DNA from: Basidiobolus meristosporus CBS 931.73
Lineage: Eukaryota; Fungi; Basidiobolomycota
Length of the DNA: 64,000 nucleotides
Reading direction: 5' to 3'
NCBI GenBank assembly: GCA_002104905.1
Contig: MCFE01000023.1
Span: forward strand, 1-64,000
This document shows, piece after piece, positions 39,387 through 62,330 of the stretch. Within the stretch, counting starts at the first letter, position 1. Every line of letters starts with the position of its first letter. Position numbers and translations under genes: made by a program. Under the pieces are notes generated by a model. That model made no database searches. It was not told the origin of the DNA and was given only the letters and a program-made list of their open reading frames with translations.

Positions 39387-42342
39387 TTAGATTCCCGCCT
39401 TTTTCAGCTCTGCTTTGAGGTGCTTCTGGAAGTAAGGGACATAGTGGTGGTTCATCAATGTATAATGTGCACCTGGCACATCGATATAGCTGTTGGCTTG
39501 TCGGGTGAATCCATCCCACTTCATGAGCATCCCGTTCAGCCAGTCCTCCTTCTTCCCGGCCAATGGGATAGCATAGAATACCGAGACGTGCTCGACTGTT
39601 CCACTGGGCTCGTAGTTGCGACCACACTTCAGCAGGGACTCTGCAATGTCGACCCACTTTTCGAGTTGGATGCGGTCGATCTCCAGTTCTTTGATGCGAT
39701 CGGGTGACGCCTTGGTCCAGATGTGATTGATCTGCTCCTCACGTGGTAGCGTGTGCAAGTACGGTGAGACTCGAGTGGCCTCTTCCTTGGTGATGAGATC
39801 CAGGAAGTACGACAGGTTCAGGAATCCCTCTGTCCAGTCCAGCTCGAGCATTCGTGGCTTGATGTGCGGCGGGATGTTCACCAAACCGACGAATGCTACC
39901 CTCTGCCCCTGAGCCTCGAGTCGTTTGGCTATCTCGAACGCCACCACCCCACCGTACGAGTACCCAGCCACCGCATATGGCCCTTGAGGCTGGGTCTTGC
40001 GAATGGCCGCAGTGTACATGTCAGCCATCTCCTCCATAGACTCGAAGTATGGGTTGTTGTCGAAGCCTCGAGCCCGCAGTGCATAGAATGGGCGTTCGTT
40101 TGCAAAGTACTTCGCCAGGTTGACGAATATGAGCACCTCACCGACCCCGGGGTGGACAAAGAAGATTGGCACCCCTGAACCTGTTACCTGTAATGGGACA
40201 ACTGGATCGTAACATTCTGCAGGCCCAGTGCCCGACTGGAGTGTGTCCAGATGTTCCGCTAGTTCCCGAATAGTGGGATGCTGCATGATTCGGATCACTG
40301 GCCAGTTCTTCAATACACATGGGAATCATTAGTGAACTGCTTGTGACCCAATACTGAAGTGCCTACAATATTACCTTGTCCAGACTGAAATGCTTGATAA
40401 TTCTTGCCTTGTATCTGTAAGAAAGCCATGATCAGCCAAAATCCTTGCTCAAATCTGCACCGTTGAGCACTTACTGCACCACCTCTAGAGAAGAGCCACC
40501 CATGCTGAAGAAGTTCTCCTCAACACACACCTCGGTAGCATTGAAGATATCGCACAAGAACGAGGATAGAGCACGTTCAGAGTCTGTGGAGGGGCTCTTG
40601 TGGCTTCGGGCTTTCTCAGCCTGCGTGACCTGCTCAACTATGCTCAGGTACTCCTCGAACTCGCCCATCTCATATCGCTCTCTCAACTTCCCACGTGATA
40701 GTTTCCCCAACGAGTTCTTCGCAAGCAAGCTAGCAGTCAGAGGACAAATCACGGTGGGTGCTTGTGAGCAGCTCATGATGAGCTTTTGTCGGATGCTCGA
40801 ATGAGTGCTCAGCATGGCTTTCTCATCTGACAATGGGAATGTGGGGAGATAGAATACCGCCACTTGTTCCGTTTGTGAGCCTTTCGGTCGGATGGGGCAA
40901 ACGGCGACGAATGATGGGACGATCCCAGGAACATCCTGCAACACCGCCTCCAGCTCATGGCTGTAGTAGTTCACCCCGCGAAGAATGATGGTGTCCTTAG
41001 TTCTCCCCACTAGGTGCAATCTGCCATCAGCCAAGCTTGCTGTGTCGCCTGTTCTGAACCAGCCGTCACTTGTGAAGGCCTGAGCGGTTGCCTCGGCATT
41101 ATTGTAGTATCCTCGAAAGAGTTGCGGACAAAAGATCTCCAGATCACCACTCAGCTCTGGTGGCACTTGTCGGCCCTCGCCATCTACGATCCTCAGGCGT
41201 AGCCCATGCGACGGTGAGCCGAGAGTGGCAAACTCCTTTCCGTTGTCATTGAACGGAAACTGCTTGTTGTAGACACACCCAGCACACGTCTCAGTCATTC
41301 CGAAGCCAGGGGCAATGATGCCTGTGAAGCCAGTGTTGGCCTCAGTGAGAGTACGAATCAGCTGCTGGCCCAAATCCACCAGGTTCGCCTCACCCCCAGA
41401 GTTGATGCGCTTCAGCTTAGCTAGATTGTAGAGTGGTTGGCCGGTGACTGAGTCCTCAAGCTTGCCTCTCAAGTCTTTTTCAATGTTGGCTAGCAGGAAG
41501 TTGGGTGCAAATGTGGAAGTAGCCTCGTAAACCTCTGCGACGAGCAATAATGACAATGGCTCCAGGGTGATCACCGAGGCGGCCACTTGCACTTGATTCG
41601 CCCCAGCCACCATTGGAATGATGTGGCTCTCCACCAGTCCAGCCACATGGTCACACCCGACCCAGTTCAGCACCGTGCTGTCCGATCCGAGGTTGTAGTC
41701 TTCGATCTTGAACTTTGCCGCGGCAAATATGTTCCCGTGGGTAAGCTCAACTGCCTTCGAGTTGCCAGTCGAGCCAGAGGTAAGCAACAGTACTGCTACC
41801 TCATCAAGAGTGCGCTGGCCATAGCCGTCATTGATGTATGGGATCTGAGGCCCATCCAAGCCACTTGCTCTTTGTACTCCGAGATCTTCAACGGTCTGAA
41901 TGTGAATGTCACACAATAGACTGGTCAACTCCGAATGATCCTTCTGTCGGCAAAGGAAGAGGGGCTTGCCGAGAAGAGTGTCTAGATGCGAGAGCTGCTC
42001 ACTTCTTTTATCATCATCCCCTCTCAGAGCACCAAGAACACATGGAACAAACTCAGCAGCCAAACAGCCCCAATAGTGCTCGATTGTGTCCTGATGATCG
42101 TCAAAGTAGAGAACAACCACCCTCTTAGACATTCCCTCTGCTAGTGGGCGTAGCCTCTCCCCAATAGCATAGGCCTGGGCCAAAAGGCTGGGATAGCTTG
42201 AGAAGGTCGGGTTGGCGATATCGACAGAATTGTTGATGTAGTACATCCCATGGGCAGGATACTTGGCGGATACATCGCGCAGAGTCTCCAGCAGATTCAC
42301 TGAGCCAGTGCTGATGTAGTTGCTGTGGCACGATAGAGACAT
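39387..42342 (-). CDS. NRPS-like A-T-TE enzyme copy A (intact, 942 aa), atromentin/terphenylquinone-synthetase-like
   Basis: Exons 42342-40475, 40414-40375 and 40307-39387 total 2829 nt and are open. A motifs LTSGSTGNSK, GMTET, WFRTGD, GRTKD and KNSLGKLSR. T motif FFSMGGSSL. TE motifs HPGVGEVLIF, GYSYGG, VNIPPH and GAHYTLM. Confidence 0.92.
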
Positions 42343-42860
42343 TTACGACGGAAGACTGCAAATACAATAGGTCAGACACTGACACCACAATGGGAATTAG
42401 CACGATTGAAGCATACCTGGCGTTAGATGAGTTTCCAAGGATCTGTATTTGAGACAGCACTTTATACTGTACTATACTTGAAGAAGTACTCTGTGCTGTA
42501 GTTGCTGTCGATTGCCAGGTATTTATAAGTGCGGAACTATAGCACAACCCTCATGTTATCTTAATGTAGGTTTTTTTGGCGTTAGTAAACCAGACGGTTG
42601 CATTGACAGTCTGCAACCGCTGACCATTCTCCTCTCGCCCATAGGGCACCACTCTGGTCACGGTGGGCAAATCGCTGAGCAGTGCCCGTATGAGACATCA
42701 TGCAACTAGCTGGGGTATCCTAGCTAGTAGTTGTAACTGCCTCTTTCAATACCTGGTAAAATCCTACTGCTGGAGTCTCAACGGTGTCCAATGCACGTCA
42801 AGAATGGTAGTTGGGAAATGGAAGTGAATGCCAATCAACACCTCACAATCATTTCAGCTG
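42343..42860 (-). promoter_or_regulatory. Conserved promoter and 5'UTR intron of NRPS-like copy A
   Basis: TATAAA on the minus strand at 42522-42527. About 500 bp highly similar (inverted) to 46200-46723 and 50560-51130. Confidence 0.6.
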
Positions 42861-43867
42861 CTGGATTTAGCAATAATCCAGATTCAAGCATCAAAGTTCA
42901 ACGAATCAGCCACCGATCTTGCTTAGTGATCGGACCTGGAAAAGCGTGTTGACAATGAGTAGCTTCGTTTGTAGCGACCAGCGCCAGAACCCGCCAACAA
43001 ATAATGTGTCGTTTATCTCGTCAGCACCTATATGGAACATGTTTACGGTAAGACCCTATTGCTATATGATTACTAATTCAGTAATGACATGGAAGCGAGT
43101 GAATTAGCACAGGCTAAAAAGTTATATTGATATTAATACGAAATGGTGTAAACGCAAGCAATAGGCAATTAAGGTAAAAATTGCTCCCTTGAATATCAGT
43201 TTAGAGCATCTGTGTAGATCTGAAGCCGTTATATATCATCATTCACTAACAATACAAGACTTTCCCCAGTCAGAACATGTGTCTGTAGATAACAGATAGT
43301 TCTCGGGTACTTAAGACCGTTTCATTTGTTCGATTACTGATCCTTGGCCAACGTATGGCGAGGAGTATTGGTTGCTAACAGTAATGACGAAAGAGTGATC
43401 CCCAACCCGAGAAGTTCCGTTTTGGAGTAAGGATCAACCTGAAGCTTGGAGTCTGGACTAAGCTTTCTCTCTCGATACCTGGAGTACCAGATGCCAACCC
43501 TGCGTGGAGCTCCTGCGTTAATGCAACACAGAGTGGAGCTGAACTCTAAAAGAAAACCCTTTCTTTCTGTGGCATCAATCCCAGTGTAAAAGTGAAATAG
43601 TATGTATACGAATCCACTAAACTTGACCGTAATGAGGTTGGCCACTCAGATGTACTTTCCTATTGGTTGTGGTTGTGATGCTTTACTATATGTCGTGAGC
43701 ACAATAAGGAACAATGAGAGCCCATTTTAAGTGGAATTTAAGGGCAAATGGGATATTTAATTTTCATGATTGGAGACAGTCGCTGGCTACAAGTTGGCTC
43801 AACTATGTGTGAGACTTTGTTCATATATCGTGTATATGCAGTTGGAGAGTAGGCTCGTACTGCCCGC

Positions 43868-44781
43868 TTAGATTCCCGCCTTTTTCAGCTCTGCTTTGAG
43901 GTGCTTTTGGAAGTAAGGGACATAGTGGTGGTTCATCAATGTGTAATGTGCACCTGGCACATCGGTATAGCTGTTGGCTTGTCGGGTGAATCCATCCCAC
44001 TTCATGAGCATCCCATTCAGCCAGTCCTCCTTCTTCCCGGCCAATGGGATAGCATAGAATACCGAGACGTGCTCGACTGTTCCACTGGGCTCGTAGTTGC
44101 GACCACACTTCAGCAGGGACCTGCTCAACTATGCTCAGGTACTCCTTGAACTCACCCATCTCATATCGCTCTCTCGACTTCCCACATGATAGTTTGTCAT
44201 TGAATGGAAACTGTCTGTTTTAGACACATCCAGCACACGTCTCAGTCGTTCCGAAGCCAGGGGCAATGACGCCTGTGAAGCCAATGTTGGCCTCAGTCAG
44301 AGTACGAATCAGCTGCTGGCCCAAATCCACCAGGTTCGCCTCACCCCCAGAGTTGATGCGCTTCAGCTTAGCTAGATTGTAGAGTGGTTGGCCGGTGACT
44401 GAGTCTTCAAGCTTGCCTCTCAAGTTGCGAGAGCTGCTCACTTCTTTTATCATCATCCCCTCTCAGAGCACCAAGAACACATGGAACAAACCCAGCAGCC
44501 AAGCAGCCCCAATAGTGCTCGATTGTGTCCTGATGATCGTCAAAGTAGAGAACAACCACCCTCTTGGACATTCCCTCTGCTAGTGGGCGTAGCCTCTCCC
44601 CAATAGCATAGGCCTGGGCCAAAAGGCTGGGATAGCTTGAGAAGGTCGGGTTGGCGATATCGGCAGAATTGTTGATGTAGTACATCCCATGGGCAGGATA
44701 CTTGGCGGATACATCGCGCAGAGCCTCCAGCAGGCCCAATGAGCCAGTGCTGATGTAGTTGTTGTGGCACGATAGAGACAT
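43868..44781 (-). pseudogene. Internally deleted NRPS-like copy A' (four fused fragments)
   Basis: The 5' A-domain start (44781-44426) is fused to a mid-A piece (44425-44196), an A-T linker piece (44195-44121) and the TE end (44120-43868). The frame is broken at the first junction (ORF ends SQLERQA*). Confidence 0.92.
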
Positions 44782-46199
44782 TTACGACGGAAGAGTGCAA
44801 ATACAATAGGCCAGACGCAATGAGAATTGGCATGATTGAAGAATACATGGCGTTAGATGAGTTTTCAAGAAGCAATATGTTGGAATTAACCTAAAAAAGA
44901 TCTCTGAGTTGTAGTTCCTGTTGGTGGGATTGAGTGTAACTAGCCCTTTCGGCTTCACCGAACTTGAAGATTGTATAATCAAACAGCTATTTCTGACCAA
45001 TCTTCTTTAGCTCGTACGTTGTCACTACTCCCTCTGAAAACAAATTGTCGGACAGCACTTGTATTAGTCATTATGCAACGAGCTAGGTTGTTTTGTTTGG
45101 TAATGATAACTATCTTTGCCGATACCGAGCAAAATTTCAACTCCCAGAGTCTCAACTGTGTTTGATGTAATCCATGAATGGTAGTGTGGTTATAGAAGTG
45201 GACGCCAATCAACATACTGCACTTCTTTCATTCACTTGATTAAGTAACAATCCTGGTTGATACAGCGAGTATTAGCTAATCTTGGTTGGTGATCGGATCT
45301 GGAAAACTTTATTATAGATGAGCCGGTTTCGGTTGAGTAATAAGCGCCATAGCCCAGAAGTAAACTTAGTCTCACCTTTCGGGTGCTGTCATCGATCTAG
45401 TGTTAGTGTCAATGTTTAGATGTAAGATATGCACAAATTGGTTACTCCTTTTGGCACCTTGATTTCGCCAGGTGAGACTTGCTGGACAAAAAATTTAAAT
45501 TTGCATTTCAACCTTGTTAATGACATGTGGTATTTTTTTCTGAAAAATATTCGGGATTTTACAGCTATGATTTTAACAGGTGTTTACGTAATGCAGTAGT
45601 TAGATTATAAGCTCGCCACTGCAATAGTCTAATTGGATCTCCGTAATGGTTAGCATCATTTTCGTTTGTGAAATCTCCCTATTTTTGCGGACTGAGGCAA
45701 ATGATGAAGCAACTACAGCTGTCGTATTACCCAGAATGGAGATTACTAAATGAATCTACTTCACTCTCCATTTAGCTTTGAACGTGTAGTAGATATCATT
45801 TAAAAGTAAATCAACGTGGGGCAGTAAAATTGAAGCCACAGGTTCAAATGGCAATTTAGTTTCAAAGCTGAAAGCCTGTGCTTTCGCCGGGATGCTGTAA
45901 TTCTAGATTTGGTACTCGACCTTATGGTAATAAATTAGTAGGTATCACTGAGGCTGCTTTTAAAGCAAAATCAATATCGAGCCAATCTCCATGTTCGTAG
46001 GGGGTTGGGTTGTACTAAGCATGTGTTTAAGCAAACGTGCTCACCAAGACAAATGACATAATTGTTACTAGCGGATTCTAGCGCTTGTGAATTCAGGTGA
46101 ACATGACACCGTAAAAACGTTCTCTGCATAGCCCGATCAACCGGCAAGATTGATAGCAGGATAGTGAACCCATTCTACTATAATCAGGGTTATTCCTAA

Positions 46200-46723
46200 A
46201 TTCAGCAGCTGAAATGATTGTGAGGTGTTGATTGGCATTCACTTCCATTTCCCAACTACCATTCTTGGCGTGCATTGGACACCGTTGAGACTCCAGCAGT
46301 AGGATTTTACCAGGTATTGAAAGAGGCAGTTACAACTACTAGCTAGGACATCCCAGCTAGTTGCATGATGTCTCATACGGGTACTGCTCAGCGATTTGAG
46401 CACCGTGACCAGAGTGGTGCCCTATGGGCGAGAGGAGAATGGTCAGCGGTTGCAGACTGTCAATGCAACCGTCTGGTTTACTAAAGCCAAAAAAACCTAC
46501 ATTAAGATAACATGAGGGTTGTGCTATAGTTCCGCACTTATAAATACCTGGCAACCGACAGCGGCTACAACACAGAGTACTTCGTCAAGTATAGTACAGT
46601 ATAAAGCGCTTTCTCACATACAAATCCTTGGAAACTCATCTAACGCCAGGTATGCTTCAATCATGCTAATTCCCATTGCGGTGTCAGCGTCTGATCTATT
46701 GTACTTGCAGTCTTCCGTCGCAA
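46200..46723 (+). promoter_or_regulatory. Conserved promoter of copy B with TATA box (46539-46544) and 61-nt 5'UTR intron (46650-46710)
   Basis: CTTATAAATA, and cag|GTATGC...TTGCAG| lying 13 nt before the ATG. No in-frame upstream ATG seen in the preceding exon. Confidence 0.6.
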
Positions 46724-49683
46724 ATGTCTCTATCGTGCCACAGCAACTACATCAGCACTGGCTCATTGGGCCTGCTGGAGGCTCTGCGCGATGTATCCGC
46801 CAAGTATCCTGCCCATGGGATGTACTACATCAACAATTCTGCCGATATCGCCAACCCGACCTTCTCAAGCTATCCCAGCCTTTTGGCCCAGGCCTATGCT
46901 ATTGGGGAGAGGCTACGCCCACTAGCAGAGGGAATGTCCAAGAGGGTGGTTGTTCTCTACTTTGACGATCATCAGGACACAATCGAGCACTATTGGGGCT
47001 GTTTGGCTGCTGGGTTTGTTCCATGTGTTCTTGGTGCTCTGAGAGGGGATGATGATAAAAGAAGTGAGCAGCTCTCGCATCTGAACACTCTTCTCGGCAA
47101 GCCCCTCTTCCTTTGCCGACAGAAGGATCATTCGGAGCTGACCAGTCTATTGTGTGACATTCACATTCAGACCGTTGAAGATCTCGGAGTACAAAGAGCA
47201 AGTGGCTTGGATGGGCCTCAGATCCCATGCATCAATGACAGCTATGGCCAGCGCACTCTTGATGAGGTAGCAGTACTGTTGCTTACCTCTGGCTCAACTG
47301 GCAACTCGAAGGCAGTTGAGCTTACCCACGGGAACATATTTGCCGCGGCAAAGTTCAAGATCGAAGACTACAACCTCGGATCAGACAGCACGGTGCTGAA
47401 CTGGGTCGGGTGTGACCATCGTGGCTGGACTGGTGGAGAGCCACATCATTCCAATGGTGGCTGGGGCGAATCAAGTGCAGGTGGCCGCCTCGGTGATCAC
47501 CCTGGAGCCATTGTCACTATTGCTCGTCGCAGAGGTTTACGAGGCTACTTGCACATTTGCACCCAACTTCCTGCTAGCCAACATTGAGAAAGACTTGAGA
47601 GGCAAGCTTGAAGACTCAGTCACCGGCCAACCACTTTACAATCTAGCTAAGCTGAAGCGCATCAACTCTGGGGGTGAGGCGAACCTGGTGGATTTGGGCC
47701 AGCAGCTGATTCGTACTCTCGACTGAGGCCAACACTGGCTTCACAGGCATCATTGCCCCTGGCTTCGGAATGACTGAGACGTGTGCTGGGTGTGTCTACA
47801 ACAAGCAGTTTCCGTTCAATGACAACGGAAAGGAGTTTGCCACTCTCGGCTCACCGTCGCATGGGCTACGCCTGAGGATCGTAGATGGCGAGGGCCGACA
47901 AGTGCCAGCCAGAGCTGAGTGGTGATCTGGAGATATTTTGTCCGCAACTCTTTCGAGGATACTACAATAATGCCGAGGCAACCGCTCAGGCCTTCACAAG
48001 TGACGGCTGGTTCAGAACAGGAGACACAGCAAGCTTGGCTGATGGCAAGGTTGCACCTAGTGGGGAGAACTAAGGACACCATCATTCTTCGCGGGGTGAA
48101 CTACTACAGCCATGAGCTGGAGGCGGTGTTGCAGGATGTTCATGGGATCGTCCCATCATTCGTCGCCGTTTGCCCCATCCGACCAAAAGGCTCACAAACG
48201 GAACAAGTGGCGGTATTCTATCTCCCCACATTCCCATTGTCAGATGAGAAAGCCATGCTGAGCACTCATTCGAGCATCCGACAAAAGCTCATCATGAACT
48301 GCTCACAAGCACCCACCGTGATTTGTCCTCTGACTGCTAGCTTGCTTGCGAAGAACTCGTTGGGGAAACTATCACGTGGGAAGTTGAGAGAGCGATATGA
48401 GATGGGCGAGTTCGAGGAGTACCTGAGCATAGTTGAGCAGGTCACGCAGGCTGAGAAAGCCCGAAACCACAAGAGCCCCTCCACAGACTCTGAGCGTGCT
48501 CTATCCTCGTTCTTGTGCGATATCTTCAATGTTACCGAGGTGTGTGTTGAGGAGAACTTCTTCAGCATGGGTGGCTCTTCGCTAGAGGTGGTGCAGTAAG
48601 TATCCAACGGTGCTGATTTGAGCAAGGATTTTGGCTGATCATGGCTTTCTTACAGATACAAGGCAAGAATTATCAAGCATTTCAGTCTGGACAAGGTAAT
48701 ATTGCAGGCACTTCAGTATTGGGTCACAAGCAGTTCACTAATGATTCCCATGTGTATTGAAGAACTGGCCAGTGATCCGAATTATGCAGCATCCCACTAT
48801 TCGGGAACTAGCGGAACATCTGGATACTCTCCAGTCGGGTGCCGGGCCTACAGAATGTTACGATCCAGTTGTCCCATTACAGGTAACAGGTTCAGGGGTG
48901 CCAATCTTCTTTGTCCACCCCGGGGTCGGTGAGGTGCTCATATTCGTCAACCTGGCGAAGTACTTTGCAAACGAACGCCCATTCTATGCGCTGCGGGCTC
49001 GAGGCTTCGACAACAACCCATACTTCGAGTCTATGGAGGAGATGGCTGACATGTACACTGCGGCCATTCGCAAGACCCAGCCTCAAGGGCCATATGCGGT
49101 GGCTGGGTACTCGTACGGTGGGGTGGTGGCGTTTGAGATAGCCAAACGACTCGAGGCTCAGGGGCAGAGGGTAGCATTCGTCGGTTTGGTGAACATCCCG
49201 CCGCACATCAAGCCACGAATGCTCGAGCTGGACTGGACAGAGGGATTCCTGAACCTGTCGTACTTCCTGGATCTCATCACCAAGGAAGAGGCCACTCGAG
49301 TCTCACCGTACTTGCACACGCTGCCACGTGAGGAGCAGATCAATCACATCTGGACCAAGGCGTCACCCGATCGCATCAAGGAACTGGAGATCGACCGCAT
49401 CCAACTCGAAAAGTGGGTCGACATTGCAGAGTCCCTGCTGAAGTGTGGTCGCAACTACGAGCCCAGTGGAACAGTCGAGCACGTCTCGGTATTCTATGCT
49501 ATCCCATTGGCCGGGACGAAGGAGGACTGGCTGAATGGGATGCTCATGAAGTGGGATGGATTCACCCGACAAGCCAACAGCTATATCGATGTGCCAGGTG
49601 CACATTACACATTGATGAACCATCACTATGTCCCTTACTTCCAAAAGCACCTTAAAGCAGAGCTGAAAAAGGCGGGAATCTAA
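46724..49683 (+). CDS. NRPS-like A-T-TE enzyme copy B (four single-base insertions; probable artefacts, otherwise a pseudogene)
   Basis: Near-identical to copy A. Extra bases at about 47420, 47721, 47908 and 48050. Introns 48596-48655 and 48696-48762. TE exon intact. Confidence 0.8.
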
Positions 49684-51130
49684 GCGGGCAGTACAAATCT
49701 ACTCTCACACTGCATATCCACGGTATATGAATAAAGTTTTACACACAGATAAGCCAACTTGAATCCAGAGACTGTTTGCAATTATGAAAATTAAACAACA
49801 CATATGCCCTTAAATTCCACTTAAAATGGGCTCTTTTTTGTTCTCTATTGCGCTCATGACATGCAGTGAAGCATCTCAAGCATAATCAGTATAGTCATCT
49901 GATTTACTCTGGTTTTGCACCGATTGAAGAGTACTACATGGTGATGGCGTCTAGCACTTCAGGCAACTATAGAATGCCTATCCAAGACTTTTAGCTTCAG
50001 GTTGGTCCCTACTCCAACCGGGAATTCTCGGGCGGAATCATTCCTTCGTCATTACTACTAGCAATTAATATATCTCCATAAGTTGGTCCTGGAATGGTAA
50101 GCTAACAAACGAAATGGTCTTACAAATCGGGAACTGTCTTATACCACCTAGCTGGTATTTCGATACAAGCGAACTATTATTTGTAAGTCAATTATATTCG
50201 AAGAATTGCTTTCGGATCTACACAGATGCTTTACACTACTATTTAAGGAAGCGATCATTAGCTTCATTACCTATAGCTTGCGTTTTACTTAACATGAATA
50301 TAAGTGAGTGGACGGAAGCTAATTTACTCGCTTTCATGCCATCACCGAATGAGCAATCTTATAGCAATAAGGTCTCACCGTAAACATGTTAGATATATGT
50401 GTTGACGAGATAAACGACACATTATTTATTTGCGGGTTCTGGCGCTGGTCGCTACAAACGAAGCTATTCATTGTCAACGCGCTATTCTAGGTTTGACCAC
50501 TAGGCCAAATCGGTGGCTGATTCGTTGAACTTTGATGCTTCAACCTGGATTATTGCTAAATCCAGCAGCTGAAATAAACGTGAGGTGCTGATTGGCATTC
50601 ACTTCCATTTCCCAACTACCATTCGTGGCAGGCATTGGACACCGTTGAGACTCCAGCAGTAGGATTTTACCAGGTATTGAAAGAGGCAGTTACAACTACT
50701 AGCTAGGACATCCCAGCTAGTTGCATGATGTCTCATACGAGTACTACTCAGTGATTAGCCCACCATGACCATAAGGTACCTCATACGGTACTGCTCAGCG
50801 ATTTGACCACCGTGACCAGAGTGGTGCCCTATGGGCGAAAGGAGAATGGTCAGCGGTTGCAGACTGTCAATGCAACCGTCAGGTTTACTAGAGCCAAAAT
50901 AACCTACCTTAAGATAACATGAGGGTTGTGCTGTAGTGCCGCACTTATAAATACCTGGCAACCGACAGCGACTACAACACAGAGTACGTCGTCAACTACA
51001 GTACAGTATAAAGCGCATTCTGACCTACTAATCTTTGGAAACTCAACTAACGCCAGGTATGTTTCAATCATGCTAATTCCCATTGCGGTGTCAGCGTCTG
51101 ACCTATTGTACTTGCAGTCTTCCATCATAA

Positions 51131-54087
51131 ATGTCTCTATCGTGCCACAACAATTACACCAGCACTGGCTCAGTGAATCTGCTGGAGACTCTGCGCGATG
51201 TATCTGCCAAGTATCCTGCCCATGGGATGTACTACATCAACAATTCTGCCGATATCGCCAACCCGACCTTCTCAAGCTATCCCAGCCTTTTGGCCCAGGC
51301 CTATGCTATCGGGGAGAGGCTACGCCCACTAGCAGAGGGAATGTCTAAGAGGGTGGTTGTTCTCTACTTTGACGATCATCAGGACACAATCGAGCACTAT
51401 TGGGGCTGCTTGGCTGCTGGGTTTGTTCCATGTGTTCTTGGTGCTCTGAGAGGGGATGATGATAAAAGAAGTGAGCAGCTCTCGCATCTGAACACTCTTC
51501 TCGGCAAGCCCCTCTTCCTTTGCCGACAGAAGGATCATTCGGAGTTGACCAGTCTATTGTGTGACATTCACATTCAGACCGTTGAAGATCTCGGAGTACA
51601 AAGAGCAAGTGGCTTGGATGGGCCTCAGATCCCATGCATCAATGACGGCTATGGCCAGCGCACTCTTGATGAGGTAGCAGTACTGTTGCTTACCTCTGGC
51701 TCAACTGGCAACTCGAAGGCAGTTGAGCTTACCCACGGGAACATATTTGCCGCGGCAAAGTTCAAGATCGAAGACTACAACCTCGGATCGGACAGCACGG
51801 TGCTGAACTGGGTCGGGTGTGACCATGTGGCTGGACTGGTGGAGAGCCACATCATTCCAATGGTGGCTGGGGCGAATCAAGTGCAAGTGGCCGCCTCGGT
51901 GATCACCCTGGAGCCATTGTCACTATTGCTCGTCGCAGAGGTTTACGAGGCTACTTCCACATTTGCACCCAACTTCCTGCTAGCCAACATTGAGAAAGAC
52001 TTGAGAGGCAAGCTTGAGGACTCAGTCACCGGCCAACCACTCTACAACCTAGCTAAGCTGAAGCGCATCAACTCTGGGGGTGAGGCGAACCTGGTGGATT
52101 TGGGCCAGCAGCTGATTCGTACTCTGACTGAGGCCAACACTGGCTTCACAGGCATTCATTGCCCCTGGCTTCGGAATGACTGAGACGTGTGCTGGGTGTG
52201 TCTACAACAAACAGTTTCCGTTCAATGACAACGGAAAGGAGTTTGCCACTCTCGGCTCACCGTCGCATGGGCTACGCCTGAGGATCGTAGATGGCGAGGG
52301 CCGACAAGTGCCGCCAGAGCTGAGTGGTGATCTGGAGATATTCTGTCCGCAACTCTTTCGAGGATACTACAATAATGCCGAGGCAACCGCTCAGGCCTTC
52401 ACAAGTGACGGCTGGTTCAGAACAGGAGACACAGCAAGCTTGGCTGATGGCAAGTTGCACCTAGTGGGGAGAACTAAGGACACCATCATTCTTCGCGGGG
52501 TGAACTACTACAGCCATGAGCTGGAGGCGGTGTTGCAGGATGTTCATGGTATCGTCCCATCATTCGTCGCCGTTTGCCCCATCCGACCGAAAGGCTCACA
52601 AACGGAACAAGTGGCGGTATTCTATCTCCCCACATTCCCATTGTCAGATGAGAAAGCCATGCTGAGCACTCATTCGAGCATCCGACAAAAGCTCATCATG
52701 AACTGCTCACAAGCACCCACCGTGATTTGTCCTCTGACTGCTAGCTTGCTTGCGAAGAACTCGTTGGGGAAACTATCACGTGGGAAGTTGAGAGAGCGAT
52801 ATGAGATGGGCGAGTTCGAGGAGTACCTGAGCATAGTTGAGCAGGTCACGCAGGCTGAGAAAGCCCGAAACCACAAGAGCCCCTCCACAGACTCTGAGCG
52901 TGCTCTATCCTCGTTCTTGTGCGATATCTTCAATGTTACCGAGGTGTGTGTTGAGGAGAACTTCTTCAGCATGGGTGGCTCTTCGCTAGAGGTGGTGCAG
53001 TAAGTGCTCAACGGTACAGATTTGAGCAAGGATTTTGGCTGATCATGGCTTTCTTACAGATACAAGGCAAGAATTATCAAGCATTTCAGTCTGGACAAGG
53101 TAATATTTCAGGCACTTCAGTATTGGGTCACAAGCAGTTCACTAATGATTCCCATGTGTATCGAAGAACTGGCCAGTGATCCGAATTATGCAGCATCCCA
53201 CTATTCGGGAGCTAGCGGAGCATCTGGACATTCTCCAGTCGGGCACTGGGCCTGCAGAATGTTACGATCCAGTTGTCCCATTACAGGTAACAGGTTCAGG
53301 GGTGCCAATCTTCTTTGTCCACCCCGGAGTCGGTGAGGTACTCATATTCGTCAACCTGGCGAAGTACTTTGCAAACGAACGCCCATTCTATGCACTGCGG
53401 GCTCGAGGCTTCGACAACAACCCATACTTCGAGTCTATGGAGGAGATGGCTGACATGTACACTGCGGCCATTCGCAAGACCCAGCCTCAAGGGCCATATG
53501 CGGTGGCTGGGTACTCGTACGGTGGGGTGGTGGCGTTCGAGATAGCCAAACGACTCGAGGCTCAGGGGCAGAGGGTAGCATTCGTCGGTTTGGTGAACAT
53601 CCCGCCGCACATCAAGCCACGAATGCTCGAGCTGGACTGGACAGAGGGATTCCTGAACCTGTCGTACTTCCTGGATCTCATCACCAAGGAAGAGGCCACT
53701 CGAGTCTCACCGTACCTGCACACGCTGCCACGTGAGGAGCAGATCAATCACATCTGGACCAAGGCGTCACCCGATCGCATCAAGGAACTGGAGATCGACC
53801 GCATCCAACTCGAAAAGTGGGTCGACATTGCAGAGTCCCTGCTGAAGTGTGGTCGCAACTACGAGCCCAGTGGAACAGTCGAGCACGTCTCGGTATTCTA
53901 TGCTATCCCATTGGCCGGGACGAAGGAGGACTGGCTGAATGGGATGCTCATGAAGTGGGATGGATTCACCCGACAAGCCAACAGCTATATCGATGTGCCA
54001 GGTGCACATTATACATTGATGAACCATCACTATGTCCCTTACTTCCAAAAGCACCTTAAAGCAGAGCTGAAAAAGGCGGGAATCTGA
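51131..54087 (+). CDS. NRPS-like A-T-TE enzyme copy C (one single-base insertion near 52156)
   Basis: Near-identical to A and B, with the same two T-domain introns and a TGA stop. ggcattcatt here versus ggcatcatt in A and B. Confidence 0.85.
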
Positions 54088-55378
54088 GCGGGCAGTACAA
54101 GCCTATTCTCACACTGCATATCCACCGTATATGAATATAGTGCTTTATATAGAAGAGCCCACCGGAAGCCAGAGAATGTTTCCAATTATGAAAATTAAAT
54201 ATCGCATTTGCCCTAAAATTCTTGCTTATGTTGCCTTGATTGGCACGGTATTACGCCAATGATGGCTTGAGGAGCGGTCGTGACAACCACAGTCCCAATG
54301 TATTTTATCATTGAAGGGAAGTAGGCTGGGGCATTCAAGTCAGCATAATAGGAATTTCCTTTTGTCAATTTTTGCTCCGCACACTCTCCACTCCTTTCGC
54401 TGCGCCGTAGGATAAAAGTCTTGGCTGGATTATATCTTTTTTAAGTTGATTCATTGATGGTAGCTCTGAAAACTGGATAAGGTCGGCTTAAGGTATGATG
54501 TTGATAGGTCAGTCAAGTACACCTGCGAGGTAACCCTTTTTATTGCTATATTCAGTGGATTTCGTCTCATTCAATTATGCAGATATCCCAGGGCCAATAC
54601 CTCGGACAGAGTGTGTACCTTGAGCCTTTATGTAGCGCTATGCCTTCAATATACAGTCGAGCACTACCTAGATATAGTAAACAGCACTCCGGGAAACGTG
54701 GTTTATTGCTTAGCCAAGACTGCCAACTTCATGTTGATCTGTGATCTCAAAGAGTACCTCGTTTTTCGTGAATGACGCTATTTATTTGGCAGTGTGTAAT
54801 AACCACTGAAGCGGTGTTAACGCTCATATCCATATATATAGAGTCTATTTATTTGCGCCAAGCATCACCTCTGTATCACCTTTGCCATTTCATCTGGGAT
54901 ATAAGGTGGAGTTTTAGTTTGATCTATTTTTTCTTACTAAAGGTGCTTTCGAATATGTACGAAGGGAGACACACTGTAAAACTCTTACCATCGTCGTGTT
55001 AGGTTGCCTGAAGACTAAGTTCTCTTTATTCTTTCTTGTGTGATAAAATGATGGGAAATCTCTGATGGTGCTATGTGAATACTATGCAAACACCCAATAA
55101 ATTCAGAATGAATAATGCTTTTAAAATCTATGTGAGTTCCAACTGTAGTCTGTATTGTATGCTTACGCAAATACAAGCACTCTAGATTAAGCATAATAAG
55201 AAATATCTGGAGGTTAAAGCAAGATACAAATACTGGTAAATGCTGGTTATTGTCTCACCCCTGCATTAGAACTCTATAAAGTGGCTTATTAGTATCCCAG
55301 CCTCTAAAGAGCACTTGTTTTAAGCAATTGATCACTGCTTATCCTTTGCTAGACTGGTTTGGGCTCAATAGTCCAAAG

Positions 55379-55727
55379 TGTTGCAAGAGTCTTGGAGATA
55401 ATGGAAGTGATTTTGAGAACAAGTAGACTATGCAGTTTTCACTTAATAACTTATTTAATGTAAAAGTAGTATTTATACTTTTACATGGTTCTGGCATAAC
55501 AAACATATAGAGTAGACTTAGAAAAGTTCCAAGAACAGGTATGCAAAGCTTGGGGCTATTTAGACAGCTCTTTGAATATTTTCATCAAAATATCAGGTAC
55601 CCAGAACATGAAAATTCTAAGTAAATCCCAACAAGTAAATTGGTCAGTATTCTCTAGAGTTGGTAGGTAATGATCTAACTGACTAAGTTAGGTGAATACT
55701 CTGGAGGAATTATAAACTCTTACAACA
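55379..55727 (-). repeat. 3' LTR of the copia element (349 bp, TG...CA)
   Basis: Ends TGTTGCAAGAG and CTCTTACAACA form an 11-bp terminal inverted repeat with one mismatch; adjacent to the PPT. Confidence 0.85.
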
Positions 55728-56451
55728 CTCCCACTCAATCAAATGTTTATACAGACTAGTCCTAATTATGACCTAAATATTCAAATTTGTCTCTAGCTAA
55801 CAATTTAGTAAATATATCTGCACTCATTTTGTCTTTATGACAATAGACTAAGTTTCCTATGCTATTCTCTATAGCTTCACACATGAAATGATATCTATTA
55901 GCAATGTACTAAGTTCTGGCATGAAAAGTTGGATTTCTACCTAATTGTATACATCCTTGGTTATCTTAAAATACATATTAGGCATTTTTAACATAAGCAT
56001 AAATATTCAAAAAGCTTTCTTAACCACATTGCTTCTTTTGTAGATTTACAGGCTGCCATATACAGCTTCTGTGGTAGAAAGTGCTACAGCTGGCTGCTTT
56101 CTTGAGTTCCATGAAATTACTCCTTTACAGTAGAAAAGGTGTGTCCTGTGGTGGAGCATCTATCTTCTAAATTTCATCCCCAATCAGCATCGGAGCATCC
56201 TGCTAGAACTTGTTCTAAATACTTACAGGAGTGCCCTAAGCAGATATCAGCAGTTCCTTGTAGGTATCTAAAAATCCACTTAACTGCCACAATTGATCAG
56301 ATCCATAGTAATGATTGTACTTGCTGACATCTTACACTAAATATCTGGACATGTTCCAAGCATGATGTACATCAGACTGCTGATCATAGATTGGTAAGGA
56401 AAGCCAGGGCTTTCAGATGGCACCAAGCTCTTCTGATTTGGTTGCATTTTG

Positions 56452-56800
56452 TGTTGTAAAAATTCGTATTTCCACCTAAATATTCACCTAACTTAGTCAC
56501 TTAGATCATCACCTTTAAATCCTAGAGAATACTGACCAAATTCCTTGTCGGGATTTACTTAGAATATTTTCACCAAAATGCCAGGTACCCAGAACATGAA
56601 AATTCTCAAAGTTGTCCAAACAGCCCCAAACTTTGCACACATGTTCTTGGGACCTTCCTTAGCCTATTCTACGTGTTTGTAATGCCAAGACCAGGTAAAA
56701 GTATAAATACTAGTTTTACATTCAATAAATCATTAAGTGAAAACCACATAATCTACTTGTTCTCCAAATCACTTCCAATATCTCCAAGACTCTTACAACT
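56452..56800 (+). mobile_element. Solo LTR of the same family, inserted antisense into the copia RT, with 5-bp TSD TTTTG
   Basis: 349 bp, an inverted homolog of 55379-55727. TTTTG lies at 56447-56451 and 56801-56805. Removing the insert plus one TSD restores the RT frame (..TPMKASLNLFKMQP..PYQSM). Confidence 0.88.
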
Positions 56801-57056
56801 TTTTGAACAGGTTAAGGCTTGCCTTCATTGGGGTAGCTGCCAGTTTACAGTCTTCCATTTGGTACTTCTTTAGTATATATTGAATACACTTTAAATGGCT
56901 TAGGGTGATAGCCTGGGTACTTCTGTACATGGCAAATCTTATCTCCAGGTAGTAAATGAGTTTTCCCAGACCCTGTGAAAATTATTGAGATGATCCTGTC
57001 AAAAGGCCATCACAAAGTTAAAGTCCTGTGACTAAGAGGTACTGATCTTGTTAGGA

Positions 57057-60000
57057 CACTGTCCAGAGACCGTTGAAAAATAATTGCACCCCAAATTTCA
57101 CAAAAAACTTGGTCAAAATTTTTCATCACAACAATGTATTAGTGGCTTTTAATTGGTTCCCTGCTAATTTGCTCACTCTCTGATCCCAGACACTCTATTG
57201 CCTCCTACATTTATGTGAATTGATTGGCTATTGCCTCTTTTCACACTCCTTACTTCCTGACTTGACCATTTCTCTTACTTTTCATGTGTACAAATTGATT
57301 TTTTCTGGTGAAACTCAGTTGCACTTCAATTGCCAGTTGTATTGACCTATACAAGTCTCTATACCCTACAGTAACATTAAGCCCAACCCCACACTCAACA
57401 AGCAACTCCATTAAAATCCACCACTCAATAAGTATTTCTGCAGTAATGCTCTGGTTCCACAACTTTGGCAGGAACCCAACGGCTTTATGCCATTGTTCAT
57501 TCACTAGTTCCCACATGTCCTGGTCTTCAGCTGGCACTGAAAGGTCTAGCTCCTCATCTGCTAGTCTTTGCAATAAATCCTTGAAATATTCCAGTGAGTT
57601 TTCTTGAGCACTGCTCTTGAAGAAGTGCTGCAACCTCTTGGTGCGCCTATTAATGTTCCAAAACTCCACTGAGGGCATTGTGATAGTCTTTTGAGCTTTT
57701 GACATTGTTGCCTTGTCTGTCAGTGGGATATCCACTCTGTCAACAATGGAGGCTGTGGAGGCTGTGGTAGACAAATAGCCTTTTTGGTAAACTTATCTAC
57801 CTTGCTGGAGTGTAACTCAACTGGCTGCGCTTCTTTTTCAGCAAACTCATCTACCTTGCTGGAGTGTAGCTCAACTGGCTGCGCTTCCAACTCTTGTGAA
57901 AACAGCTGTTTTCTTGTTGGTAATTCTTCTTGGCTATGATGGGATTCAGTCTGCTCCTGGCTTGTGGCATTAATTGGCAAGAAATGTATACTTTTTGGCA
58001 TGCCTCCCTGTCTCAGGTTTAGGTATACATTTTTCCATTTGCCTTTTCCTTTATCCCTGCCAGGTCTTTCACTGCTATTTTGTCTGAGTGTCTCTTGTAA
58101 AGAACTACGTTTTCTTCTGGATAAACTCTGCTCTGATGCATCTGTTTTGGCCTCCTTGTCCATTGCTGGTACTCTTCTGGCAACCTGACGTTTCTTTTCT
58201 GCTTGTTTTGAGCTCTTAACTGTAGTGGTGTCAGGCTCCTGTTAAAGCAGCTGGTTTTTATCACTGCCAGGTCCTTCACTGCTACTCTGACTGGGTGCTT
58301 CTTGAGTGGTACTACACTTTTTCCTTGATAAATGTTGTGCTGGTACATCTGCATCTGCCTGCTTATCCCTAATTGGCACTCTTGCAGCTACGTGATGTCT
58401 CTTTGACGCTTGTCTGGAGCTTTTAGCCCTGCTTGAAACAGGCTCTTGAGGAGGCTGCTGGTTTTTAGCCATGGCACCCTTGTTCTTCTGCATTTGATAG
58501 TTTCTGCTATTCTTAAGATACTTTCTTGGCATACCAATGCTGGCCCAAAAATCATTTGCATGTTTGAATCCAGGATAGTGCTCATGGAACAAGTCAAGTG
58601 CATTCTGCTTGGCCTTGAGTTCCTGATGGTCCCATAGTATGCCAGCCTTAAGGTGATAGCATGCTAGGCCTTTTTTAGATGTAGCCCTGCTTGTTGCTGG
58701 ATTCTAGTCCCCCTTATGGGTGCACTCTGACTGTTGTTTGTGCAAGTTCCATATTGAATGGTGTAGAAGTTGGCTTATGACCATGAGAAATCTGGTTTAC
58801 CTTGGTAGAGTTTTCCAAATAAAAATTAGTAGCTTGTTGCACCTAACCCAACTTTGCATTAATTAACTGATTACCCATGCATTGGGGCTGCATAGCTTCT
58901 TAATGCCATAGGCATAGGTGTCTCCATGTGCACATTTGTCCTCAGTATTTTCCAGCTCTTCCTGGCTGTCCTCCATGTGCCAACTCATCACATCCATGAC
59001 AGACTTTAAGGTAATATTCTTGATGGGATTGGGATATGGTAGCTCCTGCAACTTGACTTGCTTCCTATCTCCCTACACCACCCCTCCATAGGAAACTCCC
59101 AAAAGTTGAGTCTAGGTCCAATATTCTCAACATACCAAGCAAGATAGAGTAGAGAATGGGTACAGTAGTGGCAGAGATCAACACACTCAGCTTTATGCTT
59201 GTGGTATATCTGCTCAAATCCTGTTACAAACTCCTTGCACAAAAGCTGTAGAGGTGTAAAGTTGGCATTGGGGATCTGCTTGTGGATAAATATTCCTACA
59301 ATGTCCATGTATAACTCTCAATGCTTTCAATGCACTCTTGGAAGAAATGGTTTTGGAAGGCTACTTGAATAAATGCATATCTAATTCATCCAGTACATGC
59401 AGTTGTATTATTGCATATGCATATGAATATTAATTGGTGCCTGTGAGAAGTACTTAGGTTAGCAAATACTATGGAATATCTTGCCAATTCTTTCAAATTT
59501 CTTGTGCCCAGAAAAGCCAGCTACATTGCTGATGGCTGGGTATCATCAATGATAATAATATGCACTTTGACATGACAGCCATTTACTGTTTTCATGCTGA
59601 AAGCATACAAAATTAATCCAGCAATGGATACAGGTAGCAATCCAGGTTGAACAGAGATTTAGGCCCAGAAACTAGTGAGACTACCATCAGATACTTGCTC
59701 TGATACTCTAAGATAGGTGGCAGAATCAGGTTGATGCAAAGTGGTAGCCAGCAGGATTTGCTGGTAGATTACTTGTTTACTGAGAATCCATCAAGTGACA
59801 AGGCAAGGTATGGTCATATATACCTCAAAGTAGCCATTGCTTCTTAGCTGTTTGTATTGTTTGCCATCAAATATATTAGATATGTTTGTGCTTGATTGTT
59901 ACTGAGTGCAGTACTCTATAGCTTCACAATATTTGCTGGACTGCATGAGCTTCTTTAGATGGGGGATTATTGGAAAATATCTGGAGTGTGGACAATGTCT

Positions 60001-60800
60001 TCCCCCAATGGTGGTGGATTCCTGACAAGTTGGACAAGCTGTAATGGTGGCATCTTCTTATGTGAATGCCATGGAACTGTTAACACATGCTAGTATCAGG
60101 ACAGTCTCTAGATCATATGTAGCCAGCTCAATTATGCTTGTCCATTTATAATGTGTACATGGTAAGTTGCATCCCAAGATGATTAAGCAAGAAGTAGTAG
60201 TATATCCTCAAAGCACCCATGACTGATACTAATGGAAATGTGCCACTTCTCTAGCCACAACATCTCATCATTCACCAGTAGGTGGATTACTGGGCTCACT
60301 TGACTCCGTAGATTGTCCTTATACTTCTTTCCACAGGTGTTGTCTCATTGCATAATAGGATTTTGCCTGGCTCATGCAGGGTACTGTTGTTAGGGAAGAT
60401 AGGCTCTCAATCCATCAGTGAGCTTGCTTCTTCAGAGCTATCACTCTGCATGCATATTTAGAAGGCTTAGGTGAGCCATAAGGTGCCACTGACTCACCTG
60501 ACTCAGTTTGCACAAGGTAACAAGTACAACCAGGTGCCATTATAAAGTATCATATGGCCAGCAAGATATTGTTGAAACAGTGCTGACTGAGGAATGGTCA
60601 AATATGACTTGTGTGGGAAAACACTGGCCACAATCCTTGTAATACTTCCTATGCTGTCTGAGTGGTTCATGGCTGAGAGGCTTGCTACAATAGCCACATG
60701 GTCTTTTTTCTCTTTGTTTACAGCATTGGAGGGAAGTAGTCTTGTCCATGGGGCAAACAGTTTGGCACTCAACAGTGTAATGCTATTATATCATTTCTTT
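57057..60800 (-). mobile_element. Degenerate CACTA/EnSpm-like DNA transposon (transposase remnants plus a second, repetitive ORF region)
   Basis: Minus-strand fragments CGYC..H (about 60700), YDL..ACVNSSMAF..CPTC (60000-60120), SNIFDGKQY, LALSLDGF, SCWLPLCINLILPP (59700-59880) and HSLLYLA..GPRLNFWEFPME (59006-59308). Region 57250-58600 carries a 54-bp tandem repeat and a roughly 200-bp duplication. Termini not identified. Confidence 0.75.
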
Positions 60801-60829
60801 TGTCATTACTCCTGTGAATTTGTGACAGT

Positions 60830-62330
60830 CTTGTCTGTTGGATAGTTCCACATTGAGCCATGAGTGCCAGATGATGCCATAGTGTGCCAGAGAGGCCAAG
60901 TGAGCATATACTTGGCCACAAAGTGTGAAACATAGCTCTGCATCTTCATGCAAAGCAGCCCCTGTGTTTCACCTATGATGCAGGAGAAAGTCCATTTTTT
61001 GACATTTTTTTGTGGATCAATGTTGTGCAGAATGTGTAAGAGCACAGAAGAACTGAAGACATGCATCTGGGACTCAATTTCCATGGCACTCAGAATCTAG
61101 CTCCTGTGGCTTGTAACATGTCACAAAAAGCATGGCACTACCTTGGTCCACTGGTACTATCTGGCACTGTATTTAATTCTTTGCCCTAAAGTAAGATCAA
61201 TACAAAGCACTTATAGTGTTTTCACAAGAGTTGCAAGTGCAGCCCTTTGAGCTTCACTCCAGTGAGGTAGAGGAATTTTCAGAAAAAGACAAGTTTCTAC
61301 CACAGCCTCCATGTCCTCCATTGCTGACAGATTAGAGATACCACTGACAGACAAAGTAACAATGTCAAGAACTCAAAAGGTTACCATAATGCCTTCAGTA
61401 GAATTCTGGAACAATAATGCACACACCATGAGGTTATGGCACTTCTTCATGAGCAGTGTCCAAGAAAGCGCACTTGAATGTAGCAAGAATTGATTGAAAT
61501 GACTGGCAGATGAAGTGCTAGACCTTGCAGTGCTGGCTGAAGACCAGGACATATTGGAAACAGTGAATGAACATTAGACCTGTTCCATTGGATAGTGCCA
61601 CATTGAGCCATGAGTGTCAAATGATGACATAGTGTGCCAGAGAGGCCAAGTGAGCCTATACATGGCCACAGAGTGTAAAGCATAGCTCTGCATCTGTATG
61701 CAAAGCAGCCCCTGTGCTTCACCTATGATGCAGGAGAAAATCCATTTTTTGACAATTTTTATGGATCAATTTTGTGCAAGATGTGTAAGAACTCAGAAGA
61801 GCTGAAGACATGCATCTGGTACACAATACCCATGGCACTCTGAATCTAGCTCCTGTGGCTTGTAACATGTCACAAAAATGCGTGGCACTATCTTGGTCCA
61901 CTGGTACTATCTGGTACTATAGGTGCTTTGTATGAATCTTACTTTAGGGCTAATAATTAAATATAGTGCCAGATAGTACCAGTGGACCAAGATAGTGCCA
62001 CGCATTTTTGTGACATGTTACAAGCCACAAGAGCTAGATTCAGAGTGCCATGGGTATTGTGTACCAGATGCATGTCTTCAGTCCTTTTGTGTTCTTACAT
62101 CCTGCACAACATTGACCTAAAAAAAAAGGTCAAAAAATGGGTTTTCTCCACCACAATGGGTGAAATACAGGGGCTACATTGCAAGAAGATGCAGAGTTAT
62201 GCTTCACACTCTGTGACCAAGTATAGGTTCACTTGGCCTCCTGAGCACACTGTGGCATTATTTGGCACTCATGGCTCAGTATGGGACCCTCCAACTCAAC
62301 AAGTCTATTCTCTGCAAGACTTGACAAATT
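60830..62330. repeat. About 340-bp TE-derived repeat in three copies (two direct, one inverted) forming a long palindrome, plus an inverted paralog of 57500-57770 at about 61298-61577
   Basis: Copies at about 60830-61213 (+), 61580-61920 (+) and 61922-62330 (-). Confidence 0.85.

Follow-up and report, generated by a model that had tools for sequence, protein, structure and literature searches.

The window, meaning the whole stretch of DNA analysed, comprised the first 64 kb of contig MCFE01000023.1 of Basidiobolus meristosporus CBS 931.73. The first-pass annotation, made from the letters of the sequence, had placed an amplified array of NRPS-like genes at 39387-54087 and had taken the host for a non-Dikarya fungus. 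Three units of ~4.4 kb and one relic were recovered there, the outer coordinates coincided exactly with the stop codons of copies A and C, and the host is a member of the Basidiobolomycota. Copy A lies on the minus strand, copies B and C lie in tandem on the plus strand, and the relic sits between A and B. The array is probably one of paralogous non-reducing NRPS-like synthetases evolving by birth and death, with one member certainly intact, two probably intact and one wreck.

Copy A (39387..42342, minus strand) is an intact NRPS-like A-T-TE gene of three exons (42342-40475, 40414-40375 and 40307-39387), the spliced frame being exactly 942 aa. The middle exon is a 40-nt micro-exon whose peptide was matched by the Basidiobolus ranarum homologue P0004. 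Every motif quoted earlier was found (DHVAGLVE, FAPNF, SGGE, GFGMTETCAGC, GYSYG, VNIPPH and GAHYTLM), and the key residues were located at Val233, Asn314, Lys547, Ser618 of the T domain and Ser753/Asn780/His917 of the TE. The public gene model P0001 is a mis-spliced version of this copy. Its upstream region (42343..43108, minus strand) holds the promoter and a 5' leader in which a candidate GT..AG intron lies.

The relic fourth copy (43797..44869, minus strand, oriented as A) retains four collinear fragments (93-96% identity) and has suffered three internal deletions; weak similarity upstream of it extends to 45306, and the region already bears a public 262-aa model. Copy B (46724..49683, plus strand; exons 46724-48595, 48656-48695 and 48763-49683) and copy C (51131..54087, plus strand; exons 51131-52999, 53060-53099 and 53167-54087) both extend over the full length of the gene and share 98% identity with A. 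The upstream region of B (46133..46723, plus strand) stands head to head with the relic, and that of C (50318..51130, plus strand) is distinguished from those of A and B by a 47-nt insertion. These regions were conserved across the three copies at about 90-96% identity. One comparison put them at only 90-92%, so that the copies may be differently regulated, and dosage, as first suggested, is one possible reason for the amplification.

Three full-length genes had been claimed at the outset. The length was borne out for A, B and C and the integrity for A, but as assembled the frames of B and C are broken by five single-base (+1) insertions, at 47420, 47720, 47907 and 48047 in B and at 52155 in C. 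Taken at face value these would make A the sole working copy and B and C very young pseudogenes, the amplification reflecting decay and not dosage, a matter of copy number rather than of chemistry. The five frameshifts stand in the only assembly available, the decayed fourth copy demonstrates that copy death does occur at the array, and the insertions at 47420 and 52155 fall outside the sites at which the copies diverge. Against this, at three of the four insertion sites in B the assembled sequence is the exact union of the alternative alleles of A and C, set side by side, so that a consensus artefact looks likely. The extra bases are missing from the sole Illumina contig that spans these sites, although that contig is a mosaic of copies and therefore not decisive. 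Comparable breaks were absent from long unique genes of the window such as the 1447-aa ORF. When the insertions were skipped, B and C had no in-frame stop over 942 codons, pairwise dN/dS between copies was 0.12-0.15, and the private changes were far from neutral (synonymous to nonsynonymous 12:7 in B and 13:2 in C), as under purifying selection. For the unlinked paralogue P0002, the TE was 95% identical as protein and ~83% as DNA. The insertions in B and C are thus probably consensus errors, and decay of both copies appears rather unlikely. Some caution is due in general, in that the PacBio assembly can here introduce false frameshifts into near-identical repeats.

The array protein was firmly assigned to the family of aryl-alpha-keto-acid-dimerising NRPS-like enzymes (quinone/furanone synthetases), as had been proposed. 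Pfam returned AMP-binding and Thioesterase domains only, with no condensation domain, while its full-length homologues carried PF00501, PF00550 (PP-binding) and PF00975; the T motif GGSSL with its serine and all adenylation core motifs were present in the spliced 942-aa frame. In a 32-sequence TE alignment Ser753 (GYSYG) and His917 (G-x-H-Y-T-L-M) occupied invariant columns. In structural searches of Swiss-Prot, the best 20 matches of the TE model (pLDDT 89) were all enzymes of this family, and the A-domain model likewise had nothing but characterised keto-acid dimerisers among its best 20 (31-36% identity), with a fall to ~20% after them. A search for a solved structure among family members found none.

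Two positions of the A-domain code, whose extraction the first-pass annotation had suggested, were assigned. Val233, in the DHVAG motif, was taken as code position 1, the column being assigned by motifs and not by alignment to GrsA; every sequence of the A-domain alignment has H-V-A there. Asn314 is code position 5 and aligns with Asn311 of P0361, which is Asn323 of NPS3 at a constant 12-residue offset. Valine at position 1 marks keto-acid activation, and asparagine at position 5 marks 4-hydroxyphenylpyruvate (PMC10316625). Position-5 Asn occurred in 109 of 119 basidiomycete homologues, in 8 of the 9 Basidiobolus, chytrid and Calcarisporiella proteins and in none of 107 mostly bacterial homologues, which carry Val or Ile. 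The A domain as a whole was at best 33-36% identical to characterised enzymes, the atromentin synthetases being no closer than those of ascomycetes.

The expectation that the TE would track the basidiomycete atromentin synthetases over its whole length was confirmed at 56-60% identity to AtrA, GreA, InvA1/2/5 and NPS3. Six active synthetases of this type headed the TE structural list (56-57% identity, TM 0.96-0.97, rmsd ~1.5 A), with identity to the remaining family members in that Swiss-Prot search at 47% or less; by BLASTP the TE was 60% identical to AtrA (P0403). Asn780 (VNIPPH) shares its column with the INIPPH Asn of AtrA and NPS3, and the Ralstonia, Xenorhabdus, Burkholderia and MicA-like proteins have Asp in that column. 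The rule invoked earlier, that a Ser-Asn-His triad denotes a quinone former, proved unreliable: for MelA of A. terreus a quinone was predicted from the TE residues, and the product is a furanone (bioRxiv 10.1101/2020.03.25.008516).

From the comparisons above, the array enzyme is likely of the atromentin synthetase subtype, and it would most likely make a quinone pigment by coupling a pair of keto acids derived from tyrosine. The A domain would adenylate an aromatic alpha-keto acid, most likely 4-hydroxyphenylpyruvate, which would then be loaded onto the phosphopantetheine arm at Ser618 of the T domain. One unit would be handed to Ser753 of the TE, and Ser753/Asn780/His917 would fuse it with a second, forming C-C bonds in a double Claisen/Dieckmann-type condensation; what leaves the enzyme would most likely be the terphenylquinone atromentin. 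For the proposal as a whole, a birth-and-death A-T-TE array that turns 4-hydroxyphenylpyruvate into atromentin, in which we infer substrate, product and activity from sequence, the probability is put at roughly 0.55.

Two departures from this chemistry were weighed. The family and the substrate could hold while the TE releases another core, namely a butyrolactone, a dioxolanone or a furanone, for instance aspulvinone E or atrofuranic acid; several cores are known to arise from the same substrates in this family (PMC9047271), the product of MelA was mispredicted from just such residues, and the TE is still 44-46% identical to MelA and ApvA. The far closer match of the TE to six proven atromentin formers (56-57% against 47% or less), together with its Asn in a column occupied by Asp in the Ralstonia, Xenorhabdus and MicA-like proteins, makes this unlikely. 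A change of substrate to phenylpyruvate, giving polyporic acid, or to indole-3-pyruvate was judged more improbable still. Position 5 contributes to substrate choice without strictly setting it, mutation there merely relaxing specificity, and CorA I298N remains specific for polyporic acid (PMC10316625); moreover, A-domain identity is higher to bacterial homologues that have Val or Ile at this position (41%) than to AtrA (35%). Asn314 is nevertheless shared by every Basidiobolus and chytrid copy and by the great majority of the basidiomycete atromentin-type enzymes, and it occurs in none of the 107 bacterial homologues.

Among known systems, AtrA (Tapinella panuoides, B7STY1), GreA, InvA1/2/5 and NPS3 (Serpula lacrymans) resemble the array in A-T-TE layout and length (~940-960 aa), in the TE motifs GYSYG, (V/I)NIPPH and HYTLM, and in Val at position 1 and Asn at position 5. 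Multiple copies with dead members occur in basidiomycetes (InvA3/4/6 are inactive) as they do here. The array differs in its A domain, whose identity to these enzymes is low as given above, and, unlike the canonical atromentin cluster, it is accompanied by neither an aminotransferase nor an alcohol dehydrogenase gene. The B. ranarum proteins P0003-P0005 and P0008 were 70% identical over their full length, and the nearest relatives beyond these were those of Spizellomyces (P0006), Geranomyces (P0007/P0009) and Calcarisporiella thermophila (P0010), at 48-51%; all are uncharacterised. They share the TE motifs, with position-5 Asn in all but the Calcarisporiella protein (Thr), and the chytrid and Calcarisporiella genes were single in the loci fetched, in contrast to the array. 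The Calcarisporiella gene adjoins an O-methyltransferase and an MFS transporter gene. Bacterial A-T-TE proteins of Ralstonia solanacearum, Xenorhabdus, Streptomyces and Hyalangium have the same architecture and belong to the same family, at 39-46% full-length identity; the R. solanacearum homologue is presumably RalA, the ralfuranone enzyme. The Hyalangium and Streptomyces TEs have Asn as in the array and are 58-60% identical, whereas at position 5 the bacterial homologues carry Val or Ile. The ascomycete enzymes AcyN, MelA, ApvA, AtqA, BtyA, MicA, TdiA and PngA share family and mechanism, but form a separate clade (support 100/98), with A domains 31-36% and TEs 36-47% identical, the latter clearly less similar than those of the atromentin synthetases.

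In the maximum-likelihood tree a split with support 99/95 separated fungal from bacterial and protist sequences, and the Basidiobolus and chytrid orthologues fell on the fungal side. There they were sister to the Boletales atromentin synthetases (84/75), and separate A-domain and TE trees gave the same neighbourhood (support 82-84). A tree keeping the Dikarya together was not rejected by the AU test (p-AU 0.24), and the sister relation to the Boletales enzymes is regarded as weak. Recent horizontal acquisition from bacteria has been proposed for many Basidiobolus NRPS genes, and bacterial signatures were reported in 60% of the NRPS and NRPS-like genes of this strain (Tabima et al. 2020, PMC7466969). 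The A-domain identities, slightly higher for bacteria than for AtrA, lean the same way, and moving the Basidiobolus/chytrid genes to the bacterial side was disfavoured only marginally (p-AU 0.073). Such an origin is nonetheless very improbable here: the fungal-side placement is shared with chytrid orthologues and both domain trees concur, the gene has spliceosomal introns including the 40-nt micro-exon, and its GC content resembles that of its surroundings. Orthologues occur in chytrids and Calcarisporiella, and the lineage gives the impression of an old fungal one, not of a recent arrival from bacteria.

It is possible, if doubtful, that the Basidiobolus and chytrid genes are the surviving early-fungal members of a lineage ancestral to the Boletales atromentin synthetases. 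In that case terphenylquinone synthesis from 4-hydroxyphenylpyruvate would be older than the Dikarya and not an invention of the basidiomycetes, and in Basidiobolus, which lives in gut and dung, the several copies of the array would serve to produce a redox-active quinone of the atromentin type. A clade with the atromentin-type marker residues beside the Boletales enzymes would, if true, place the beginnings of this chemistry far earlier in fungal history and would counter the usual view of Basidiobolus secondary metabolism as mostly bacterial import. To our knowledge the characterised enzymes of the family all come from Dikarya (mushrooms and moulds) or bacteria. A literature search found no paper linking a quinone synthetase with early-diverging fungi, and the 'bifurcate evolution' picture of the basidiomycete quinone synthetases was drawn without such fungi (PMC10316625).

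The earlier observation that neither an aminotransferase nor a tailoring gene accompanies the array was upheld. No Pfam family of aminotransferases, alcohol dehydrogenases or tailoring enzymes was found in the ORFs of the 64-kb window, a scan from which intron-split genes could escape, and the publicly annotated genes lying up to 10 kb from copy A included no cluster partners. For the unlinked paralogue there were none among the upstream gene calls, and no genes were called in the 10 kb downstream. With no clustered aminotransferase, 4-hydroxyphenylpyruvate would derive from general tyrosine metabolism. The gene is short (942 aa, two introns) and easy to express, and offers a route to the first natural-product assignment in the Basidiobolomycota. 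Gene models for the locus are already in the public annotation, and the unlinked paralogue P0002 has been named automatically as "atromentin synthetase".

Three copies of a unit of about 4.4 kb were found across positions 39387-54087 in Basidiobolus meristosporus CBS 931.73 (Basidiobolomycota; GCA_002104905.1, contig MCFE01000023.1), a non-Dikarya host, as the first-pass annotation had supposed; the window covers the first 64 kb of this contig. Copy A (39387-42342) lies on the minus strand; the plus strand carries B (46724-49683) and C (51131-54087) as a tandem pair. A relic fourth copy (43797-44869), in the orientation of A, consists of four collinear fragments of 93-96% identity with three internal deletions; A and the relic are placed head to head with B and C. 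The repeat arms are 95-98% identical and the coding parts 98.1-98.4%. About 600-900 nt of upstream sequence is kept per unit, the first 590 nt at 90-92% identity. The array first described, of three full-length genes and a relic, was confirmed, although that description had overlooked the frameshifts of B and C. The amplification may serve gene dosage, as had been proposed.

The predicted splicing of copy A, with exons 42342-40475, 40414-40375 and 40307-39387, places two introns either side of a 40-nt micro-exon, the peptide of which (YKARIIKHFSLDK) agrees with the homologue P0004 of B. ranarum, and the spliced frame is exactly the 942 aa originally proposed. Pfam returned AMP-binding and Thioesterase for copy A and no condensation domain. 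The A domain contains the A3 motif TSGSTGNSK, Val233 and Asn314 at code positions 1 and 5, and the A10 lysine Lys547. The T-domain serine is Ser618 in GGSSL, and the thioesterase (TE) residues are Ser753 (GYSYG), Asn780 (VNIPPH) and His917 (GAHYTLM). Gene models for the array are already in the public annotation (A, 906 aa; B, 862 aa; C, 914 aa; relic, 262 aa), which spans the breaks in B and C by spurious introns.

Using tblastn and DNA alignment, +1 insertions were located at 47420, 47720, 47907 and 48047 in copy B and at 52155 in copy C, and neither frame is open in the assembled sequence. At three of the four sites in B (47720, 47907 and 48047) both alternative paralogue alleles are written next to each other, which adds 1 nt. 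One site reads CTCTCGACTG against CTCTC-ACTG in A and CTCT-GACTG in C, another reads TGCCAGCCAG against TGCCA-CCAG in A and TGCC-GCCAG in C, and the third is doubly polymorphic (AAG/AGA). A and C differ at about 45-50 positions in about 2.9 kb, and by a rough estimate three out of four random insertions would fall on A/C allele unions with a probability near 1e-4. Logan contigs from two DNA runs of the same sample were aligned to 46650-52400 at 99% likeness, with coverage of the insertion sites other than 47420 and 52155. The sole Illumina-derived contig over 47720, ~47908 and ~48049 is without the extra bases, which is weak evidence as sequence from different copies is mixed in the contigs (one carries the alleles G-G-G-C-C over 48924-49312, a combination of no assembled copy). 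When the insertions are skipped, B and C run without a stop through 942 codons, and pairwise dN/dS among the copies is 0.12-0.15. Of the changes private to one copy, B has 12 synonymous and 7 nonsynonymous, and C has 13 and 2. Long single-copy genes elsewhere in the window are unbroken. Together, the allele unions, the Illumina contig, the open frames with their dN/dS and the unbroken single-copy genes suggest that most of the insertions are consensus errors. The same allele-union artefact may write false frameshifts into near-identical repeats elsewhere in the PacBio assembly.

The proteins nearest to copy A were P0002 (an unlinked paralogue in B. meristosporus, automatically named 'atromentin synthetase'), the B. 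ranarum fragments, and homologues from the chytrids Spizellomyces and Geranomyces and from Calcarisporiella, followed after the fungal homologues by hundreds of bacterial A-T-TE proteins. A Suillus 'atromentin synthetase' ranked fourth in an exhaustive representative search, and when used as query it led to Swiss-Prot AtrA (P0403) and Serpula NPS3 (P0361). The top PDB sequence match was McyG, with no solved structure found for any family member. AlphaFold models (pLDDT 89 for the TE, 88 for the A domain) were compared with Swiss-Prot. AtrA, GreA, InvA1, InvA5, InvA2 and NPS3 took TE ranks 1-6 (56-57% identity, TM 0.96-0.97), followed by the inactive InvA6, InvA4 and InvA3 (50-52%) and, below these, by the ascomycete enzymes (36-47%). 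The same 20 enzymes filled A-domain ranks 1-20 at 31-36% identity, after which identity fell to about 20%. Membership of the array enzymes in the keto-acid-dimerising family is given a probability of about 0.95. At this level the interpretation of the first-pass annotation was largely right.

Use of the specificity code was limited to positions 1 and 5 of ten, position 5 being anchored on the published NPS3 Asn323 and position 1 on the rule of Seibold et al. 2023 (PMC10316625), by which Val signals keto-acid activation, together with the invariant H-V-A motif; by the second rule of that paper, Asn at position 5 is the marker for 4-hydroxyphenylpyruvate. P0361 is offset by a constant 12 residues from the published NPS3 motif positions, which makes its Asn311 equivalent to Asn323, and Asn314 of copy A aligns with this residue. 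The column is Asn in 109 of the 119 basidiomycete homologues compared and in eight of the nine proteins from Basidiobolus, chytrids and Calcarisporiella; a set of 107 mostly bacterial homologues never has it and shows Val or Ile instead. A swapped position-5 residue made NPS3 and PpaA1 less specific, whereas CorA stayed specific (PMC10316625). In the TE, AtrA and NPS3 have Asn as the aligned partner of Asn780, whereas the Ralstonia, Xenorhabdus, Burkholderia and MicA-like TEs have Asp. This pattern fits the proposed rule that Asn marks quinone formers and Asp furanone formers, but the rule is fallible: MelA, predicted from its TE residues to form a quinone, made a furanone (bioRxiv 10.1101/2020.03.25.008516). 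Conversion of 4-hydroxyphenylpyruvate to atromentin would be a reasonable assignment for the array enzyme, at even odds or slightly better. In P0122, a Suillus ampliporus 'atromentin synthetase', code position 5 holds Ile, not Asn, and the catalytic His is missing (GDNRTLM); like InvA3/4/6, this paralogue is probably inactive or diverged.

A tree of 49 sequences (LG+C20 PMSF) separated the fungi from bacteria and protists with support of 99/95. Basidiobolus and the chytrids were grouped at 99/98, with the Boletales atromentin synthetases as their sister group at 84/75, and A-domain and TE trees built separately gave the Basidiobolus genes the same neighbourhood. A special kinship to the atromentin synthetases is suggested by this placement, and a tree holding the Dikarya together was not rejected by the AU test (p = 0.24). 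Recent transfer of the array genes from bacteria is disfavoured by their position on the fungal side of the 99/95 split, although a constrained tree in which the early-diverging clade falls on the bacterial side was only marginally disfavoured (p = 0.073). What can safely be said is that the array genes represent a fungal branch of the family and are compatible with vertical descent. Full-length A-T-TE proteins with the Asn-type TE motif were also seen in transcriptomes of the diatom Stephanopyxis turris (P0143, P0269) and the amoeba Dracoamoeba (P0123); these group with the bacterial part of the tree, which may reflect contamination or transfer.

P0002 (L001:10001-12962, MCFE01000545.1) is a fifth, unlinked family member in the B. 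meristosporus genome, with protein identity of 76% in the A domain and 95% in the TE. Gene conversion as the source of the latter figure was ruled out, since DNA identity there is only about 82-90%, with about 83% for the TE; the cause is strong purifying selection, and constraint on the TE is, on these comparisons, unusually strong.

The neighbouring genes are ordinary ones (nitrate reductase, a SWIRM/SWI3-type protein, Trm732/THADA, an F-box LRR protein and Kre9). Nearest to copy A are a Zn2Cys6 fungal transcription factor (30819-33278, plus strand) and, directly downstream of the copy, an ABCD-type half transporter (PF06472; 35606-38131, minus strand). ORF Pfam searches of the window found no aminotransferase, oxidoreductase or methyltransferase; none was among the genes called upstream of P0002 either, and the annotation is empty for 10 kb downstream of that gene. 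Directly past copy C, 54200-64000 is an AT-rich stretch of about 10 kb (37-43% GC) with short ORFs only, and of the 15 that reach at least 70 aa, the seven longest gave no Pfam match. Scans of the window for tRNAs and tandem repeats gave nothing relevant.

NRPS-like genes of B. meristosporus CBS 931.73 were counted by Tabima et al. 2020 (PMC7466969), in a text that nowhere names quinones or the quinone-synthetase family. In the literature searched, no paper was found joining 'quinone synthetase' with 'early diverging fungi', and the one paper naming both Basidiobolus and atromentin mentions them in unrelated places. With the array enzymes, a known kind of enzyme gains a new and as yet uncharacterised member from Basidiobolomycota, a phylum in which none has been studied.

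In B. ranarum, at least four homologous gene pieces (P0003, P0004, P0005 and P0008) lie on contigs of only 1.5-7.5 kb, which suggests that a multi-copy array also breaks that assembly. The Calcarisporiella thermophila homologue P0010 (L004:4679-12772, MU987572.1) is flanked by an MFS transporter and a divergently oriented small-molecule O-methyltransferase (PF08100 + PF00891), and the locus resembles a small gene cluster that would make a methylated phenolic compound.
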